Positions 2,924 to 62,390 of a DNA stretch of 64,000 nucleotides are shown here, in pieces. The translations under genes and the position numbers were made by a program. The stretch lies in the IMG/VR virus record IMGVR_UViG_3300003322_000571, positions 1-64,000 of that record; one strand, given 5' to 3'. The stretch's first letter is position 1; the number at the start of each line of letters is the position of its first letter. The notes under the pieces were generated by a model. It was not told where the DNA came from. It did not search any database and worked only from the letters and a program-made list of their open reading frames with translations.

Positions 2924-2997
2924 TGCGGGGTGGTGTAGCCCGGTAGCACACCAGGCTCATAACCTGGAGGTCAGACGTTCAAATCGTCTCCCCGCAT
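2924..2997 (+). tRNA. tRNA-Met(CAT), initiator-like T-loop
   Basis: CCAGG-CTCATAA-CCTGG; TTCAAAT loop. Confidence 0.9.
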
Positions 2998-3286
2998 CAA
3001 AGTGAGCTTTGAAGGTTAGTAACCGAGACACCCTTCTTTATGACACTTAAACTGCTGACAAAGTCGATAAATTCCTTCTCAGGATGTGCAGTTGTCAAGG
3101 TTCACCCCCAAACAGTCTCAGTCCTGCTAATGACTGAGTGGTGGAGGCCGTAACTGTGAAATCAGTTTGCGCCCTACGGTTGCAGAGGACGTCTTTCTCT
3201 GAAAGTCACTGGAAAGAGCTTGCTCGCCGGTTAAAGTGACATACGTCGTGATAACCTATTCGACGAACAATTTAAAGGGGTTTGAT

Positions 3287-4093: not shown

Positions 4094-4176
4094 GCGGGTA
4101 TAGCTCAGTTGGTAGAGCACCGGTCTTCCAAACCGGAGGCGAATAGTTAACGCAGGTTCGAATCCTGTTGCCCGCT
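4094..4176 (+). tRNA. tRNA-Gly(TCC) with an enlarged variable loop
   Basis: CCGGT-CTTCCAA-ACCGG; variable region of about 15 nt. Confidence 0.85.
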
Positions 4177-4191
4177 CAAATGGAGAAATCC

Positions 4192-4836: not shown

Positions 4837-4938
4837 AGGTCCATGGTGTAACGGCAGCATTCCGGTCTCCTAAGTGCTTGCTCTAATGAGCATTTAGGAA
4901 AACCGTCGGTCGCGGTTCGAATCCGTGTGGACCTGCCA
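4837..4938 (+). tRNA. tRNA-Trp(CCA) with a 28-nt hairpin insertion in the anticodon (4871-4898)
   Basis: AGGTCCA/TGGACCT-G-CCA; removing the insert restores CGGT-CT-CCA-AA-ACCG. Confidence 0.8.
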
Positions 4939-12682: not shown

Positions 12683-14170
12683 ATGAATATTCGTCAATCC
12701 GAAGACATCATCCGTCGCCGCGCTGAACTGTGGGCTGAGCTGGAAGCTCTGGAAGATCCCCGCACAATCACGTCGCTTGCCGACAACCCCATCCTCGATA
12801 CTGACAGCTACAAGCTGTGCCACCAGGCAATGTACAACATTCTTGGTGTGACCAAGTCGTTCTCGTACATCGAGCCTCGAATTCACGACAAGACGATGTT
12901 CTTCGCAGGCCTTCAGATGTATCTGAAGCGTATGAAGCCGATCACGCACAAGATGGTTGATCAGGCGAAGGAATTCTTCGGCAAGCACATCATCGGTGGT
13001 GCTGAGATGTTCCCGGAAGCTGACTGGCGCCGTGTCGTCGATGAATTCGGTGGTTATCCTCCGATCAAGATTCGTGCACTGCCGGAAGGTACTGTGATCA
13101 AGTCGCGTAACGCGCTGGTCACGATCGAATGTGACGTTCCTGGCCTCAGCTGGCTCGCTGCGTACTACGAAACTGCGATCCTTCGCGCTGTGTGGTATCC
13201 GACGACCGTCGCTTCGAAGAGCTACGACATTCGTCAAATGCTTCGCAAGTTCGCTGAACAGACGAGCGATCTGTCTGTCGAAGAAGTCGTCATGTTCATG
13301 TACCATGACTTCGGTGCGCGTGGTGTGTCGAGTTTCGAATCTGCCGGCCTCGGTGGCGCAGCCCACATTCTTGCAGGGTCGTGGGGTACTGACACGATCA
13401 CAGGTGCGATCTTCGCCAACGAACTGTACGGCTCTGACATGAGCGCGTTCAGTGTGTTTGCTACGGAACACAGCATCATGACGATGCGTGGCCGTGAAGG
13501 TGAACTGCAGACGGTTCGTGACATCATCAAGACGTACAACAAGGGTCCTGGGACGATCGTGTCGATCGTTTCTGACGGGTACGACATCTTCAATCTTGCT
13601 GACCATTACTGCACGACGCTGAAGCAGGAAATCATCGACGCAGGTATTCGCCTTGTTGTTCGTCCTGACTCTGGTGATGCTGTTGACGTAATCTGCAAGC
13701 TGCTGCTGAAGTTCGAAGCAGCTTACGGCGTGACGGTCAACAGCAAGGGATACAAGGTGTTGAACACCGTTCGTATCCTGCAAGGTGACGGCCTGTCGAC
13801 GGTCGAAGATTTCGCCAAGATCGTTGGTGCGGTCATCGCTCTGGGATTCGGCATTGAGAACCTCGTGTTCGGTATGGGTGGTGGTCTCTTGCAGATCGTC
13901 AACCGTGACCTGTACAAGTTTGCGATGAAGACTTGTGCTGCGGAAGTCAACGGTCAGTGGATCGATGTGTTCAAGGATCCTGTTACTGACCAAGGAAAGC
14001 GCTCGAAGAAGGGTCGTCTGACGGTCGTCAAGCGCAACGATGAAGCGATCACCGTTCGCTTGGAAGAAGTACTGCCGACTGATGTCGAACTGATGCAAGA
14101 CGTGTGGTATGCCGGTACTCTGTACAAGAGCTACAACGTCGAACAGGTTCGTGCAAACAGCCGTGCATAA
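12683..14170 (+). CDS. nadV: nicotinamide phosphoribosyltransferase
   Basis: DTDSYK, HDFGARG, ATEHS, RPDSGD, QGDG, FGMGG, FAMK motifs. Confidence 0.95.
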   Translation: MNIRQSEDIIRRRAELWAELEALEDPRTITSLADNPILDTDSYKLCHQAMYNILGVTKSFSYIEPRIHDKTMFFAGLQMYLKRMKPITHKMVDQAKEFFGKHIIGGAEMFPEADWRRVVDEFGGYPPIKIRALPEGTVIKSRNALVTIECDVPGLSWLAAYYETAILRAVWYPTTVASKSYDIRQMLRKFAEQTSDLSVEEVVMFMYHDFGARGVSSFESAGLGGAAHILAGSWGTDTITGAIFANELYGSDMSAFSVFATEHSIMTMRGREGELQTVRDIIKTYNKGPGTIVSIVSDGYDIFNLADHYCTTLKQEIIDAGIRLVVRPDSGDAVDVICKLLLKFEAAYGVTVNSKGYKVLNTVRILQGDGLSTVEDFAKIVGAVIALGFGIENLVFGMGGGLLQIVNRDLYKFAMKTCAAEVNGQWIDVFKDPVTDQGKRSKKGRLTVVKRNDEAITVRLEEVLPTDVELMQDVWYAGTLYKSYNVEQVRANSRA

Positions 14171-22736: not shown

Positions 22737-22951
22737 TGGAACTAAAGGTACGAGCAATTGTCCGTGTTAAGCGAGCAAACGTCGAGTTTGCTCCAGGACT
22801 TGGAATTGGTGTCCTTGCAACACAAGAGTTCAAAGTTCAAGTGCCGTTGGGTCGAACTGTGACCGATCACAGAGTTTCAGCTTGCATTCATGATGTTGGA
22901 CAAGCATTGCTTGACGATAGTGTAGAAGTAATCTACGAGGAAGTGAAATGA
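22736..22951 (+). CDS. hypothetical protein
   Basis: Translationally coupled ORF. Confidence 0.6.
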
Positions 22952-24021
22952 AAATCTACCTTGTCGGCGGTGCAGTTCGCGATATCCTTCTTGGTCTTGA
23001 GCCGAAGGATCGTGACTACGTCGTTGTTGGTGCAACTCCTGAAGATATGCTCGCTAAGGGCTTTTCGAAAGTTGGTGCATCGTTTCCTGTGTTCCTTCAT
23101 CCTGAAACTGGTGAAGAGTACGCTCTTGCACGTACCGAACGGAAGACGGGCGTTGGTTACAACGGGTTTGACGTGACGTTCGATACGTCTATCACTCTGG
23201 AAGATGACCTTCGTCGTCGTGATCTGACGATCAATTCAATGGCAATGGACCTCGAAACGAACGAGATCATTGATCCGTTCGGTGGTCAAAGTGATCTCAA
23301 GCGAAAGATCCTCCGTCATACAAGTGAAGCGTTTGCTGAGGATCCGGTTCGTGTTCTTCGTACTGCTCGGTTCGCAGCTCGGTACGGGTTTGATGTGTCA
23401 GAAACGACACTGGAGCTGATGGAACAGGTCGCTCCAGAACTTGACCATGTTCCTGCGGAACGAATCTTCGCCGAGTTCCAGAAGGGCTTGATGGAGAAAG
23501 CTCCGTACAGGATGCTTGGTGTACTGGTACAGTGCTACGCTGACAACGTTAAGTCGGTTGAACCATTTCTTCGTGGTGATCATGATCTGTGGCAACGTCT
23601 GCACCTTGTTCGAGATGATACGCCGTTGCATGTTCGGTTTGCTCTGATCGCTCGTCGCTTCCACCCGGAAGATTACGAAGCGTGCAAGATTCCTACAGAC
23701 CTTGCACGAGTGGCGAAAGCAGTTCAGTCGCACTTCTATCAATGGAAGGGACTTCGTACTTGCTCTGATGAACGGTTCGTTAAGATGTGTGACAGATACC
23801 GTGCTTTCAGCAACCCGGACTTCTTCCAGCAAGTGCTCGATGTATTTGAATTCATTGAACATCCGTACGCGATCAAAGGTGTATGGCGTGAACCTATCAA
23901 CGAACGTCTGGCGTTGGCAACGAGCATCGATGCTGCAACAATTGTTGCTAGTCTGCCGATTAAAGACGGCAAGTTGATTCAGGCGAAGATTCACGAAGCA
24001 CGTCTTGCCGCAATGAAGTAA
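22948..24021 (+). CDS. cca: tRNA nucleotidyltransferase (CCA-adding enzyme)
   Basis: [40 protein letters not shown]. Confidence 0.95.
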
Positions 24022-32944: not shown

Positions 32945-33027
32945 TCCACAGTAAGCATAATTGGTACTGCAACGCACTGTTAATGCGTCTTCCTTGAGTC
33001 TTGCTGGTTCGAGTCCAGCCTGTGGAG
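32945..33027 (+). tRNA. tRNA-Asn(GTT) with an enlarged variable loop, nested in an inverted repeat
   Basis: ACGCA-CTGTTAA-TGCGT. Confidence 0.85.
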
Positions 33028-33041
33028 CTTTGTACACATAT

Positions 33042-37613: not shown

Positions 37614-37684
37614 GGGATGCAAACTTTAAGGTGAAGTACCTGGCTTTTAACCAGGAAAACAGGGGTCAGTACCCTGGCGTCCTA
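37614..37684 (+). tRNA. tRNA-Lys(TTT), atypical T-loop
   Basis: CCTGG-CTTTTAA-CCAGG. Confidence 0.8.
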
Positions 37685-42304: not shown

Positions 42305-42706
42305 ATGCAATACAGGATCACCGTGACGGCTGTTCCGTCCGATCTTGCACGCGGTAACAATAAGCCGTACATTGACTGGATTCGTCAGCTGACCGGTGAT
42401 GCACTTGCTGATGGCCATCGCAAGTTCTGTGCGATCCGTGATGGCATGCCGTTGTCATACGTGACGTGGTATCGTCCGACCAAGCCTGCTCCTCTTGGAT
42501 TGTCAGTCGAAGTTGAGGAAATCCTGACGGAGCAGGAACTGAAAGACCGTGAAGCTGCGCAGCTCCGTGAGTTCATGGTCGAAAAGTTCCAAAACCTGCT
42601 CAAAGAGGGCGCTGAGGGATTCAGCGGCTCCGCTGTCGAAGCATGCCGCATGCTGATCAAAGATCCGACACTGATCGGTCACAAGTACATCGCAGCGGGT
42701 GGTTGA
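42305..42706 (+). CDS. hypothetical protein
   Basis: AGGAGG RBS. Confidence 0.65.
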   Translation: MQYRITVTAVPSDLARGNNKPYIDWIRQLTGDALADGHRKFCAIRDGMPLSYVTWYRPTKPAPLGLSVEVEEILTEQELKDREAAQLREFMVEKFQNLLKEGAEGFSGSAVEACRMLIKDPTLIGHKYIAAGG

Positions 42707-43205
42707 TATGGATCGATATACACCATTCGTCATTGCTGGCGTTCTTGCGTTTGGATCGGTCGCTGTACTACGCACCTGTTCCCCGAGTTACCGTGAGGTG
42801 GTTGACAAGCCTGCGGTTTCGATCACCGTCAATCACACGAAGGCTCCGTACCAATGGAAAGTGATCCGTGTGCTCGACGGTGATACCGTTGAAGTCGATG
42901 CAAAGTTCTTCCCCGAAGAGCTCGGCAACATCCGCGTGCGGATTGAAGGAATCGATACACCCGAATCAGGTGGCCGAGCAAAATGTGACGACGAACGTGA
43001 CCGTGCGAAAGTCGCAAAGAAGTTCGCCAAGGACACTCTGGAAGGCAAAGTGATCGAAGTCCGTCAAGTGAAGACAGACAAGTACGGTGGTCGTATCGTC
43101 GGTGACATCTACATCGATGGCAAACCCTATCGCCAGCTGTTGCTTGAAAAGGGACTTGCGAAGTCGTATGATGGTGGTACAAAATCATCATGGTGTCGCC
43201 TATGA
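42699..43205 (+). CDS. thermonuclease (SNase) family protein
   Basis: RVLDGDT, RIEGIDTPE, DKYGGR, GLAKSY. Confidence 0.9.
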   Translation: MVDMDRYTPFVIAGVLAFGSVAVLRTCSPSYREVVDKPAVSITVNHTKAPYQWKVIRVLDGDTVEVDAKFFPEELGNIRVRIEGIDTPESGGRAKCDDERDRAKVAKKFAKDTLEGKVIEVRQVKTDKYGGRIVGDIYIDGKPYRQLLLEKGLAKSYDGGTKSSWCRL

Positions 43206-46936: not shown

Positions 46937-47007
46937 GCCTCAGCCGATGGAGCGGCGGGACGCCTTCTAAGCGACCTTTGATGGGGGTTCGAATCCCTCC
47001 TGAGGCA
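46937..47007 (+). tRNA. tRNA-Arg(TCT), short D-arm
   Basis: GCCTCAG/CTGAGGC; loop CT-TCT-AA. Confidence 0.8.
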
Positions 47008-47022
47008 CATAAGGAGATAAAT

Positions 47023-47223
47023 ATGATCAATGAAGTATGGCACATCAAAGTGCCGGGCAAGGCAAAGCTTGTCACAAAACGCGTTGTGGAACAAACAGAA
47101 CTTACTACTGTGCTTGAGGATACGGAAAGTCCTTTGGAACAGTTTGGACTCAATGTATTCGCACGAGAACGTAGTCGTTACTTAACCGATGATCTCAAGT
47201 TTGTTGAACAGGTGTCAGAATAA
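47023..47223 (+). CDS. hypothetical protein
   Basis: AAGGAG RBS. Confidence 0.65.
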   Translation: MINEVWHIKVPGKAKLVTKRVVEQTELTTVLEDTESPLEQFGLNVFARERSRYLTDDLKFVEQVSE

Positions 47224-47238
47224 CCTAGGAGAAGTACG

Positions 47239-47919
47239 ATGAAGTACATCGTTGAAGTTCATGCCGCTGAGGGCGGTGACGATAGCAAGTTGTTCGTGAA
47301 GGACCTTGCGCAAGCATACACGAAGTTGTTCCAGCGTTTTGGCTGAAAGCACCGGGTTGTTGTAGAGAAGGACGGCGAAATTCACATTGAAGTGAGTGGC
47401 TCTGATCTATCACAGCTCAACAATGAACCCGGTGGCCATAGGCTTCAACGAATTCCTCCCACGGAAAAACGTGGAAGAGTTCATACGTCCACTGTTACTG
47501 TCGCTGTAATCGATACAGATAGCTATGCGACACCTGATTTTACTCAGATTGATCCTAGTGATTTCAAGATTGAGTGGTACTCAGGAACAGGTGCAGGTGG
47601 ACAGCACCGTAATAAACATCAGAACAGTATCCGACTTACACACGTACCTACGGGGTTAGTTGAGACGTCTCAGTGCCGGAGCCGGGAGGCTTCTCACAAA
47701 GAGGCGATGAGTCAGATGGTGAAGCGGTTGCAGAGCAATGCAAGTTACCAGCGTGTAGTAGCTCAATCAATTGAGCGTAAGCGTCAAATGGGAACAGGTA
47801 TGCGAGGTGACAAAATTCGTACATATCGCTTCCAAGATGATGTTGCCACAGACAACCGTACAGGTAAGAAGGTCAACCTTTCAAAAGTAATGAACGGACA
47901 ATTCGACCTTCTTTGGTAA
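47239..47919 (+). CDS. class-I release factor (RF1-like PxT motif, lacking domain 1) with an in-frame TGA at codon 36
   Basis: EVHAAEGGDDSKLF...FG*K; EPGGHRLQRIPPTEKRGRVHTS; GAGGQHRNK; KIRTY. Confidence 0.9.
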
Positions 47920-48456
47920 TCATTTGTTCAGTGTTTGTAGAATAGCCTTGACTTTGGCGGAGTTGATCTCTTTCGGATCCTCCGCCTTTTCCTTTGCTGG
48001 ATGCAGAACACTATGAATGATCGATTCAGCGATCTTCTTAGCACCCGATACTGGCTTGACTTCCTCTTCTACGACTGGTTGTTCCGTTTCCTCTTCTGGT
48101 TCAGTTTCACTTTCCGTAATCATCTCTGGCAATGATTCAGAATGGACTTCAACGATTGGTTTACTGTCGTAGCTAATGTCACCCTTTGCAGCTTCGAAGA
48201 AATATCCGTCAACAATCACTTCAATGCGGAATTCGGTCGGCTTGTCTTCCATCTCCTTCAATGCTGCAACATCAACTGTCCATCCCGTTTTTGATGTTGG
48301 TACGCGTTTTGCATGGAACAACGTTTCTGTAAACGTATCACCAACACACAGACGAACTTTCGGAACTTCGAATCCATCGATGTTCATGATGTTGACATCG
48401 AACTCAACCTCTGTCGTTTCGTTCAGATTTAGATTGATTGTCGTTGAATCAGCCAT
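47920..48456 (-). CDS. hypothetical (late/virion) protein
   Basis: Minus-strand operon. Confidence 0.7.
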   Translation of the reverse strand: MADSTTINLNLNETTEVEFDVNIMNIDGFEVPKVRLCVGDTFTETLFHAKRVPTSKTGWTVDVAALKEMEDKPTEFRIEVIVDGYFFEAAKGDISYDSKPIVEVHSESLPEMITESETEPEEETEQPVVEEEVKPVSGAKKIAESIIHSVLHPAKEKAEDPKEINSAKVKAILQTLNK

Positions 48457-49516: not shown

Positions 49517-50587
49517 ATGAGCGTCATTGTAGCGAAGTCGAACAGAAAGGTTTGCTCAACACCAACGTACAATTGTTTTCCAGCTGTCACAGAACAAGTA
49601 ATTGTTCCTGCCGGCGCAACTGTATTCATTGATGGTTTGTTGACAGACAAGTTCGCCGCTGGCAAATGGTTCATCACATTAGCTACTTCTGATGATCGTC
49701 TTCAAGGGTATGAGCTCTACGCTACCCACCGTAATGGTACTTCACCAACACACGTAATCTACGGTGAAGTTGGCTCACTGATCAATCACACAACGAATGT
49801 TGTGATCAATGCGTCACGTTTGACGTTGACTATCGAAAACAACGAATCGATTGATTTGCTTGTTTGTTTCACACGCGTTGCTGTTCCAAAGGTTCTCAAT
49901 TACGTTGAGACACTCGATGTTGTTGAAGTTGGTAATTTGAACGGCTTTGTTCCAGCAAACACTTCAGGTTCTGTTGATTTCATCGGCAACCAACAAGCAA
50001 TCGGTGTTAAATGGGTTGTTGCTGTTACAACGTCTACAGGTGAGCGTAGTTCTGCTCAAGTGTATGCATCGCTCGGTACAACTGTCCAGGCAGTAACGTA
50101 CGGATTCATTGGTGATCAACTAGCGTATTCAATTGACGTCGAACAGGTAGCCGGCTTTGGATATAATCTCGTTGTGTCGAATCTGACGAGTAATCCGATC
50201 CGCGTAGATATCACACGTGTTCCTATTCAGTTGACCACAGGCGTGTCATATTGTGGTCCTAGCGCAGGTCTTGACCTGTGGATTCCACAACCTGTCACGG
50301 TTCAGCCAACACAGACGACAACTGTCGACACATTGTCAACGACGCAGGCATATGCTGCTGCGAAATGGCTTGCGGTGTTGTCAAATACGACAAATCAAAC
50401 AATGGCTTTTGAAGTTGCATCTGTTGAATCGGGTGTTACTTCAGACACTATGTACGCAATTATCTCCGACTACTTTGATGTAGACGTAGAGACCGTTGTA
50501 TCAGGTCAGACCGTACAACTTAACGTCACTAATAATCAACCTGATGCAATTACTGTTCGAATGCTGCGCATTCCGGTAGCCTTGTAA
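49517..50587 (+). CDS. virion protein with three internal repeats
   Basis: Three (A/V/G)KW...Y(G/A) beta-rich repeats. Confidence 0.7.
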   Translation: MSVIVAKSNRKVCSTPTYNCFPAVTEQVIVPAGATVFIDGLLTDKFAAGKWFITLATSDDRLQGYELYATHRNGTSPTHVIYGEVGSLINHTTNVVINASRLTLTIENNESIDLLVCFTRVAVPKVLNYVETLDVVEVGNLNGFVPANTSGSVDFIGNQQAIGVKWVVAVTTSTGERSSAQVYASLGTTVQAVTYGFIGDQLAYSIDVEQVAGFGYNLVVSNLTSNPIRVDITRVPIQLTTGVSYCGPSAGLDLWIPQPVTVQPTQTTTVDTLSTTQAYAAAKWLAVLSNTTNQTMAFEVASVESGVTSDTMYAIISDYFDVDVETVVSGQTVQLNVTNNQPDAITVRMLRIPVAL

Positions 50588-58275: not shown

Positions 58276-58823
58276 TTTACTTGTTTTTAGATACGGAGTT
58301 CACCTCGTTTGAACAACCAGAGCTGATCTCCATTGGCATCGTTTCGGAAGACGGTCAACATGAATTCTACCGTGAAGTGTCCGACCACAATGCGTATAAA
58401 CGTAGCCAGTTCGTCAAGGACGTCGTCATCCCGTTGTTGTTCAACGACTACGCAACAAGCATGATTCGTGAGTACGTTGCTATGGATCTCAACAAGTGGA
58501 TCGATAGCCTCCCAACCGATCAAGTGACAATTGTTGTTGATTATCCTGGTGACTGGCATCTCGTTAAGCCATTGCTTGATAAGGTGTCTGAGCGACGCGT
58601 TAAGATCAATGCTGAGATGCGTAATCACTCGTTCCTTGCTGCTGCACGGTACCGAGCTGTTGATGTCTCGCCTGAAAAGACATTGGAAGCAATGTTCGTG
58701 ATGGAGGAGTCTGAAGAGGCTTACTTCAAGACAGATCCTCGTCAACATCACGCTTTGGTCGATGCACGAGCAATGCGTGCTGGATGGATTGCAGCTTTGG
58801 AGGTTCTCAATGGACAGCAATAA
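58272..58823 (+). CDS. DEDDh 3'-5' exonuclease
   Basis: FLDTEF, LISIGIV, HHALVDA. Confidence 0.88.
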   Translation: MIYLFLDTEFTSFEQPELISIGIVSEDGQHEFYREVSDHNAYKRSQFVKDVVIPLLFNDYATSMIREYVAMDLNKWIDSLPTDQVTIVVDYPGDWHLVKPLLDKVSERRVKINAEMRNHSFLAAARYRAVDVSPEKTLEAMFVMEESEEAYFKTDPRQHHALVDARAMRAGWIAALEVLNGQQ

Positions 58824-59766
58824 ACTACTAGGAGGCTTTTATGGCCTCGTTCTTGGTGATGCTGTTGGTGTTCCGTTTGAATTTCAACAGCCGCGCCAAC
58901 TACCGCCGCTGTCAAAAATCGACATTGTGATGGCTGATGTTCCCAAGTTCACCAAAACATATCCGCAAGTCCCGTACGGTACCTGGTCCGATGACACAGC
59001 ATTGTCATTGTGTCTTCTTGATGCGTTGCTTGATTTTACCGAGCCGGAGATGTGGCACGGCGACTTTGTCGAGAATATGCAAAATTGGCGATTCCATGGC
59101 AAATTTACTCCGTATAACGAGAAGAAATTTGACATTGGGTTGCAGACTGCCATGGCATTGACTGAACTGGAAGACGGATTGAGTATTCAGGCGCGTGTGG
59201 ACGGCCCAGATCGTTGTGGAAACGGTGCTTTGATGCGTAGCCTTCCAGTTGCCCTCGTGTATGCTTACGTACCAGACCACGACGTTCGTGCAAACTTAAT
59301 TGCCAATGTTACACTCGATCACGTCAATGCTACCCACGCGAACATGATGAGCAAGATTGTCAGTTTGGCGTATACGTTGCTGGCATCATATCTTCTCGAT
59401 GGAGTGTATTGGTTCGATGCCATTGATCTGGCGCTTGATAAGACCGAACAACTTCTTGGTGAAGCTTATAAGGATGACATGTTGAAGTTCCGAGCTTATG
59501 AGCATCGTGAACCAACAGGAACAGGCTACTCTGTTGATACATTCTGGTCTGCGATTTATGCATTGAAGGCTGGTTCAGACTTCCGTACAACGATTCAGCA
59601 TGCTATTTCACTTGGCAACGATACAGACACAACTGCATGCGTTGCTGGTGGACTCGCGGGGATTATCTACGGGTTTGATCGTCTTCCTGTTGATTGGCTT
59701 GCACATCTTCGCGATAAGCAACAAATTGATCAATATGCTCAGCGACTACTAATTATCTCACTATGA
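58810..59766 (+). CDS. ADP-ribosylglycohydrolase
   Basis: GDAVGVPFEF, WSDDT, GNGALMR, GNDTDT. Confidence 0.93.
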   Translation: MDSNKLLGGFYGLVLGDAVGVPFEFQQPRQLPPLSKIDIVMADVPKFTKTYPQVPYGTWSDDTALSLCLLDALLDFTEPEMWHGDFVENMQNWRFHGKFTPYNEKKFDIGLQTAMALTELEDGLSIQARVDGPDRCGNGALMRSLPVALVYAYVPDHDVRANLIANVTLDHVNATHANMMSKIVSLAYTLLASYLLDGVYWFDAIDLALDKTEQLLGEAYKDDMLKFRAYEHREPTGTGYSVDTFWSAIYALKAGSDFRTTIQHAISLGNDTDTTACVAGGLAGIIYGFDRLPVDWLAHLRDKQQIDQYAQRLLIISL

Positions 59767-62292: not shown

Positions 62293-62390
62293 GCCAGCGT
62301 TTCTAATATTGGCCTTAGGGGTGCCCTTATAAAGCACTAAGACCCGTCTAGATCAGGCGGTTAATGTGGGTTCGATTCCCATCGCTGGTA
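62293..62390 (+). tRNA. tRNA-Ile(TAT)-like with a long variable arm
   Basis: GCCAGCG/CGCTGGT; loop CT-TAT-AA; extra arm of about 28 nt. Confidence 0.7.

Follow-up and report, generated by a model that had tools for sequence, protein, structure and literature searches.

A phage RF1-type release factor gene with a conserved in-frame UGA as a probable read-through gate

We found that a soil jumbo phage carries a shortened RF1-type translation-termination factor whose gene is interrupted by a conserved, leaky in-frame UGA, so that synthesis of the factor probably requires programmed read-through of this stop. The gene belongs to a large phage gene family in which 101 of 104 distinct gene versions are gated by such a stop, by a prfB-style +1 frameshift, or by both. 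The analysed window is the first 64 kb (64,000 nucleotides) of a 350,089-bp IMG/VR contig (IMGVR_UViG_3300003322_000571), which encodes virion and baseplate proteins, a CCA-adding enzyme and NAMPT. ARAGORN detected 30 tRNA genes in the window and Rfam added three further candidates. Runs that hold near-identical sequence are root, rhizosphere and soil metagenomes. The coordinates of the release factor gene and of other features in the window are summarized in Table 1.

Table 1. Features of the release factor gene and of the surrounding window
Position	Strand	Feature
4837-4938		Odd tRNA-like gene of uncertain identity
42699-43205		SNase domain, the only Pfam hit among ten neighbouring ORFs
46937-47008	+	tRNA-Arg(UCU), the last tRNA of the window's tRNA arrays, just upstream of the release factor gene
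47023-47223	+	Small ORF (66 aa from ATG) of unknown function, without Pfam hit, ending 16 nt before the release factor start
47227-47231	+	Shine-Dalgarno AGGAG, 7 nt before the ATG
47239-47919	+	RF1-like gene of 226 codons
47239-47343	+	First 35 codons (from the ATG), encoding a beta strand and the helix whose tip is the GGDD loop, counterpart of the RF1 GGxE stop-codon-reading tip
47344-47347	+	In-frame TGA (47344-47346) followed by A (tetranucleotide UGA-A), preceded by GGC (Gly)
47347-47916	+	Distal 190 codons in the same frame: rest of domain 2 with Q..PPT..HTS, domain 3 with GGQ, and domain 4
47392-47919	+	Portion captured by the mechanical ORF list
47455-47463	+	PPT
47596-47604	+	GGQ
47917-47919	+	Terminator TAA, abutting the stop of the convergent gene
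47920-48456	-	Convergent gene
49517-50584		ORF of 356 aa used for a protein search of phages

Both pieces flanking the TGA belong to one release factor gene. The 35-residue piece matched Pfam PCRF positions 102-132 (E 5.9e-6), while the distal piece matched PCRF 152-194 and RF-1 5-116. Moreover, E. coli RF1 aligned through the stop in a single tblastn segment (47248-47931), with 35% identity over RF1 residues 112-346. The gene structure described in an earlier note, which was based on the sequence alone and also remarked that the ORF list captures only the distal part, was therefore confirmed. No second release-factor-like gene was found in the window, and a scan for promoters and terminators around the gene gave nothing above shuffled sequences. 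A DNA search of the region against GenBank phages and a protein search with the 356-aa ORF found no match, and E. coli genomes gave no match either.

The TGA is not a sequencing error, and the window is not recoded. Logan contigs from four runs of four different studies (root, rhizosphere and soil) covered the codon with no other letter, and one of them carried a synonymous G>A at 47322, 22 nt upstream. This rules out an assembly-specific error, although assembled contigs hide minor variants. TGA is an ordinary stop elsewhere in the window, where it ends 49 of 113 greedy non-overlapping ORFs (TAA and TAG end 55 and 9, respectively), with about ten ATGA stop/start overlaps. Allowing TGA as sense did not raise coding density (0.891 against 0.893), and both code 4 and code 15 were rejected for the window. 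The seven largest plus-strand genes have 52 TGG codons and no in-frame TGA. The release factor gene is thus the only gene in the window that needs TGA to be read.

Profile searches placed the protein with RF1. NCBIfam models gave 155-158 bits for prfA, 96 for prfB and 48 for prfH, and a PDB sequence search put RF1 first, at 117 bits against 80 for RF2. Nevertheless, the match to the prfA models (TIGR00019/NF001859) covered only model positions 107-333 of 347, and scores of 158-197 bits fell below the cut-offs of 400 and 423. The protein starts where RF1 residue about 106 lies and lacks RF1 domain 1, which the earlier note did not notice, so it is an RF1-like factor rather than an equivalog. 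In the alignment to E. coli RF1 and RF2, both taken from NC_000913.3, the decoding residues were LQRIPPTEKRGRVHTS, against VQRVPATESQGRIHTS in RF1 and LVRKSPFDSGGRRHTS in RF2, i.e., the Gln before the tripeptide, the Pro-x-Thr (here Pro-Pro-Thr) and the Thr of HTS are all of RF1 type. A variant Asp replaces the invariant Glu of the helix tip, giving GGDD where RF1 and RF2 have GGDE and GGTE. An AlphaFold model of P0034, a 64%-identical homolog in the protein database (mean pLDDT 85.6), superposed on ribosome-bound RF1 with TM 0.85 over its whole length, compared with 0.63 for PrfH. In that model, residues 1-60 have pLDDT 87-96 and form strand 2-11, helix 14-34 and strand 37-44, and the interrupted codon lies at the helix-strand junction. 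The pre-stop piece is therefore an integral part of domain 2 carrying the helix tip that reads the first stop-codon base, and the distal ORF alone would not be a working decoder.

The interrupted codon aligns with the Trp of E. coli RF1 (ARRWRVE), with Phe of RF2 and with Leu of distant relatives. The earlier note had placed the stop at a conserved Trp position, and this was supported, but one correction is needed to its basis. Three apparently full-length homologs with W at this site in the protein database (P0034, P0037 and P0046) are code-4 gene calls whose DNA also has TGA. The Trp assignment therefore rests on E. coli RF1 and on in-clade relatives that have TGG there.

To examine the conservation of the stop, we used the distal piece to retrieve 55 viral, 80 metagenomic and 12 MAG loci. 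The loci that carry both the N-terminal motif and the PPTE motif were classified by walking from the conserved A-A-E-G-G motif to the first stop; ten loci lacking a recognisable N-terminal motif, mostly at contig ends, were left out. The resulting 141 genes collapsed to 104 distinct versions. Of these, 48 (45 distinct at the nucleotide level around the site) have TGA exactly 27 codons after the motif, as in the window (class A), and none has TGG or another stop there, although synonymous sites are saturated. All 44 of those with enough upstream sequence start at an ATG lying 33-39 codons before the TGA, and 35 of them have an SD-like 4-mer upstream. Across 45 relatives, pN/pS was 0.39 in the 27 pre-stop codons (pS 0.79) and 0.18 around PPT, with pS about 0.78, indicating purifying selection on both sides of the stop.

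The nucleotide context is also under selection. The base after the stop was A in 30 and C in 15 of 45 versions, the leaky contexts, and never G or T. Where the next residue is Leu, it was CTN in 15 of 15, although TTR makes 46% of Leu codons in the same genes (about 1e-4 under gene-wide codon frequencies). These statistics were not corrected for phylogeny, although the tree shows many deep, independent lineages. By contrast, the window's own TGA terminators prefer T at +4. UGA-A is the context most misread by tRNA-Trp in E. coli, and +4U gives the strongest termination (PMC5289835). Gly at -1, on the other hand, could be a protein constraint rather than a termination signal.

On a maximum likelihood tree, inferred by a quick search with SH-aLRT support only, the phage family formed one clade (support 98) sister to E. 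coli RF1, with RF2 as outgroup. Class A and its derivatives formed a 55-row clade (support 100) with no uninterrupted member. Interestingly, the five rows in which the Trp codon is TGG all carry a replacement gate, namely TGA-C four codons downstream in three loci (L100, L101 and L103) and CTT-TAG-C six codons downstream with the distal ORF in the +1 frame in two others (L096 and L140). Two further loci (L012 and L081) have both the TGA and a CTT-stop shift site, and another (L045) has a TGA plus CTT-TAG. The main sister group (38 distinct versions) has, one codon from the class A position, an invariant CTT-T preceded by C-GGAGG and a 3-nt spacer, with the distal ORF in +1, comparable to E. 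coli prfB AGGGGG-TAT-CTT-TGA-C. The stop in this group is TGA in 27, TAG in 10 and TAA in 1 version, flips often on the tree and showed no relation to local G+C. Only three versions (L023, L116 and L053) are uninterrupted, and they have Leu at the site. The interruptions of the other 101 lie within a 20-codon zone. Selection therefore acts on the presence of a recoding gate, not on a particular codon.

As for the mechanism, the frame in the window is unchanged and no matching codon for a hop exists. RNAalifold on 22 class A sequences predicted no conserved pairs after the stop (the median z-score of single folds was -1.08), and there is no conserved in-frame start after it, since the called starts of truncated homologs differ. 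The gate must therefore be passed by a tRNA reading UGA. Near-cognate decoding of UGA by tRNA-Trp in an A or C context is established, and we consider Trp insertion in competition with RF2 the most likely route. Under this model, which we regard as probable on comparative evidence and without RNA, ribosome-profiling or protein data, ribosomes translate 35 codons and reach UGA-A with Gly-tRNA in the P site. Either host RF2 then releases a useless 35-residue peptide, or a near-cognate Trp-tRNA of host or phage decodes UGA and translation continues to give the 226-residue factor with Trp where RF1 has Trp. As no conserved stimulatory structure follows the stop, read-through may be only a few percent or less. 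The yield should rise when RF2 activity on UGA is limiting, which is the logic of the prfB frameshift that the sister clade uses literally. The need for read-through and the prfB analogy proposed in the earlier note are thus supported, the latter more strongly than the sequence alone could indicate, whereas the proposed role as a sensor of low RF2 or of a phage suppressor tRNA remains an inference. Because the factor's decoding residues are of RF1 type (UAA/UAG), the gate is best read as cross-regulation rather than prfB-type self-regulation. One possible rationale, which we favour, is load balancing, in which extra RF1-type capacity takes UAA stops, about half of the window's stops, off RF2 when RF2 is short.

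Several alternatives appear less likely. The UGA might be decoded by a phage opal suppressor tRNA(UCA), or by an over-expressed or altered phage tRNA-Trp, so that the factor would appear only once the phage tRNA set is active, as part of a partial code-change module. In line with this, the gene lies inside the phage tRNA arrays, as in relatives, where it is often beside a phage tmRNA; one relative (L018) has a 72-nt tRNA with anticodon UCA 1.7 kb from its release factor gene, two others (L008 and L029) carry tRNA-Trp(CCA) near the gene, and TGA-recoded Jade phages pair RF1 with a suppressor tRNA and TrpRS (bioRxiv 10.1101/2021.08.26.457843). The odd tRNA-like gene of the window may also be noted here. 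However, no tRNA with anticodon UCA or CCA was found among the ARAGORN and Rfam tRNAs of the window, which covers only 64 of 350 kb, or within 3 kb of the gene in about 45 other class A loci. An efficient suppressor would be costly, as 43% of window ORFs end in TGA, and no other window gene needs TGA as sense. Furthermore, the strict avoidance of G or T at +4 points to competition with a release factor rather than cognate decoding, and the sister clade achieves the same gating with a frameshift that no suppressor explains. An artefact or decay (sequencing error, recent pseudogene, selenocysteine codon or split gene read as two polypeptides) is very unlikely. Although gene callers annotate only the distal 175-186 residues in most database entries, this reading is contradicted by the four independent assemblies, the conservation in 45 nucleotide-distinct relatives and the purifying selection on both sides. 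Further evidence against it is the lack of a SECIS-like hairpin, of tRNA-Sec in the window and of a conserved internal start, the buried hydrophobic nature of the site (W/F/L) in relatives, and the strand and codon-reading helix supplied by the 35-residue piece.

True self-regulation, in which the factor has broadened specificity and itself terminates at UGA as well as UAA/UAG, is also less likely but would most easily explain why the gating stop can be TGA, TAG or TAA and switches readily across the family. The fixed Asp at the helix tip of the family (GGDD/GGED against GGDE/GGTE), the unusual PPT and the argued autoregulation of the Mimivirus RF gene (PMC3521657) also speak for it. On the other hand, the residues that define specificity are all of RF1 type and none is of RF2 type, and profiles and the tree place the family with RF1. 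A plain throttle, setting a fixed low output of a dosage-sensitive factor from a tRNA region that is presumably highly transcribed, is likewise less likely. Release factor over-expression does reduce fitness in B. subtilis (PMC12421855), and the interchangeable stops of the frameshift clade fit a generic weak-stop throttle as well as an RF2-specific sensor, arguing against strict RF2 specificity for the family as a whole. Yet a weak ribosome-binding site would achieve the same, whereas most relatives keep an SD-like motif and ATG. Moreover, the gate has been re-invented or moved at least five times without ever being lost in the class A clade, and any stop-codon gate responds to release factor activity by its nature.

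Recoding-controlled release factors are well known for bacterial RF2 only. In prfB, as here, a class-I release factor gene is interrupted early (codon 26 in prfB, codon 36 here) by a weak in-frame UGA and full-length product is made only when termination fails, but the window gene keeps the frame, has no CTT and no internal SD, and encodes a factor not expected to read the gating UGA. A 2025 survey of more than 12,000 genomes found the motif only in prfB, never in prfA and never with TAG (PMC12421855), and all CUU-stop entries of RECODE are prfB (PMC10885494), whereas phage relatives use TAG in 10 of 38 versions. The nearest precedent is the Mimivirus R726/Megavirus mg280 class-I release factor (Jeudy et al. 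2012, PMC3521657), whose gene needs a conserved UGA read-through in a weak tetranucleotide (UGA-C), with Trp predicted to be inserted, and a +1 frameshift at a second stop near the 5' end. That factor is eRF1/aRF1-type in a eukaryotic virus, while the window gene has only the read-through, and in the phage family the two signals are mostly alternatives in different clades, although L012, L081 and L045 combine both. The design also corresponds to the hypothetical read-through-regulated release factor discussed by Atkins et al. 2016 (PMC5009743), who state that no bacterial RF2 gene has it and that the counterpart with UAG in RF1 genes is unknown; here it occurs in a phage RF1-type gene, but with UGA. 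Code-change modules of TGA-recoded phages (Borges et al., bioRxiv 10.1101/2021.08.26.457843) likewise encode an RF1 together with translation genes, but are written in standard code and serve genomes with many in-frame TGAs, whereas this window has none apart from the release factor gene. Huge phages are known to encode RF1, RF2, tmRNA and other translation genes, with no recoding mentioned (PMC7162821). Like PrfH and ArfB, the protein is short, has a GGQ domain and lacks domain 1, but it retains the RF1 stop-codon-reading elements and scores far below the prfH cut-off of 166.65 (TIGR03072). We found no published description of a recoded phage RF1, although our literature search did not reach most subscription journals and a prior description cannot be excluded.

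The design appears here in phages in dozens of diverged lineages, and a sister clade has copied the prfB cassette into an RF1-type gene, sometimes with TAG. Public annotations of this family are systematically wrong, as most of its database proteins are annotated as 167-191 residues, i.e., cut at the interruption, or else read with code 4, and recoding-aware gene callers are needed for phage translation genes. The interchangeable gates (read-through, frameshift or both) provide a natural series for studying how termination efficiency is sensed, how phages manage host termination capacity late in infection, and what an RF1 without domain 1 does on the ribosome. More tentatively, this widespread family of phage-borne, domain-1-less RF1 factors may be built around an obligatory recoding gate at codons about 36-53, which has interconverted during evolution between UGA read-through, prfB-like CUU-stop +1 frameshifting and combinations of both. 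On this reading, the family would be a phage-encoded termination-capacity homeostat that reads host release factor activity (RF2 at UGA gates, RF1 at UAG gates) and adds RF1-type capacity accordingly. It would then be the first recoding-regulated RF1, the natural realisation of a read-through design that was postulated, and then not found, for bacterial release factors, and a convergence with the giant-virus RF gene.

Rfam detected a tRNA-like gene (41 bits) in the window that was not found by ARAGORN. It has A1-U72, G73 and an encoded CCA, and a 28-30 nt insert in the anticodon loop pairs with the anticodon region to extend the arm by a 12-bp helix (MFE -40.5, z -3.5). The anticodon could be CCU (Arg), or CCA (Trp) if the insert is removed, and the gene might bear on UGA decoding. 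Two more weak candidates were found only by Rfam, one with anticodon UAU and a 25-nt variable region and the other a 69-nt UUU candidate at the gathering threshold. Several of the tRNAs predicted by ARAGORN are also over-long, including two of 84 nt. Among the relatives, a 335-kb contig (locus L018) carries a 72-nt tRNA with anticodon UCA 1.7 kb from a class A release-factor gene. This tRNA is opal-suppressor-like; ARAGORN labels it SeC, but it is far too short for tRNA-Sec. Local coding density is 0.74 under code 11 and 0.90 with TGA as sense, although over only 6.5 kb. The window also encodes auxiliary genes, which are listed with the other features in the table below.

Features in the window and in related loci
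Sequence	Coordinates	Strand	Feature
Window	4837-4938	+	tRNA-like gene
Window	62293-62390	+	Weak Rfam-only tRNA candidate
Window	37615-37683	+	Weak Rfam-only tRNA candidate
Window	4094-4177		Over-long ARAGORN tRNA (84 nt)
Window	32945-33028		Over-long ARAGORN tRNA (84 nt)
Window	47272-47283		Helix tip, codons 12-15
Window	12683-14170		Nicotinamide phosphoribosyltransferase
Window	22948-24021		tRNA nucleotidyltransferase
Window	58762-59766		ADP-ribosylglycohydrolase
Window	42699-43205		SNase-domain nuclease
L018	5199-5270	-	tRNA with anticodon UCA
L005	4075-4496		tmRNA
L007	4136-4505		tmRNA
L013	2459-2852		tmRNA
L028	2097-2455		tmRNA
L048	127-493		tmRNA
L066			tmRNA
L073			tmRNA
L022, L039, L121, L127, L128, L143, L145, L148, L149, L151	about 2980-3000 in each locus		Shift site of prfB-like cassette

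The related loci with shift sites listed in the table carry prfB-like cassettes with CTT-TAG instead of CTT-TGA, and one carries CTT-TAA (L120). This stop choice is reported as absent from all 8,164 bacterial prfB motifs. Furthermore, among loci L012, L081, L045, L037/L042, L026/L129/L130, L034, and L036, there are genes with two gates, namely TGA plus a CTT-stop shift, or in-frame TGA plus in-frame TAG in L037, while others have in-frame TGA or TAG at other nearby codons (+28, +34, +37, +38). Some of these may come from genuinely recoded phages.

The family is systematically mis-annotated in the protein database. About 80% of the closest 120 entries (P0001-P0120) are truncated at the gate (167-191 aa), and the 222-237 aa entries that were checked are code-4 translations that show W for TGA. 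Two long database proteins, P0129 (477 aa) and P0154 (481 aa), match the distal piece in two separate stretches and may be tandem or fused release-factor-like domains.

Every sequence inspected in this family has GG(D/E/A)D at the helix tip, where RF1 and RF2 have the invariant GGxE that contacts the first stop-codon base, and PPT rather than the usual PAT/PVT. Although no tmRNA was found in the window, a phage-encoded tmRNA lies within about 1 kb of the release-factor gene in many relatives, suggesting a termination and ribosome-rescue module.
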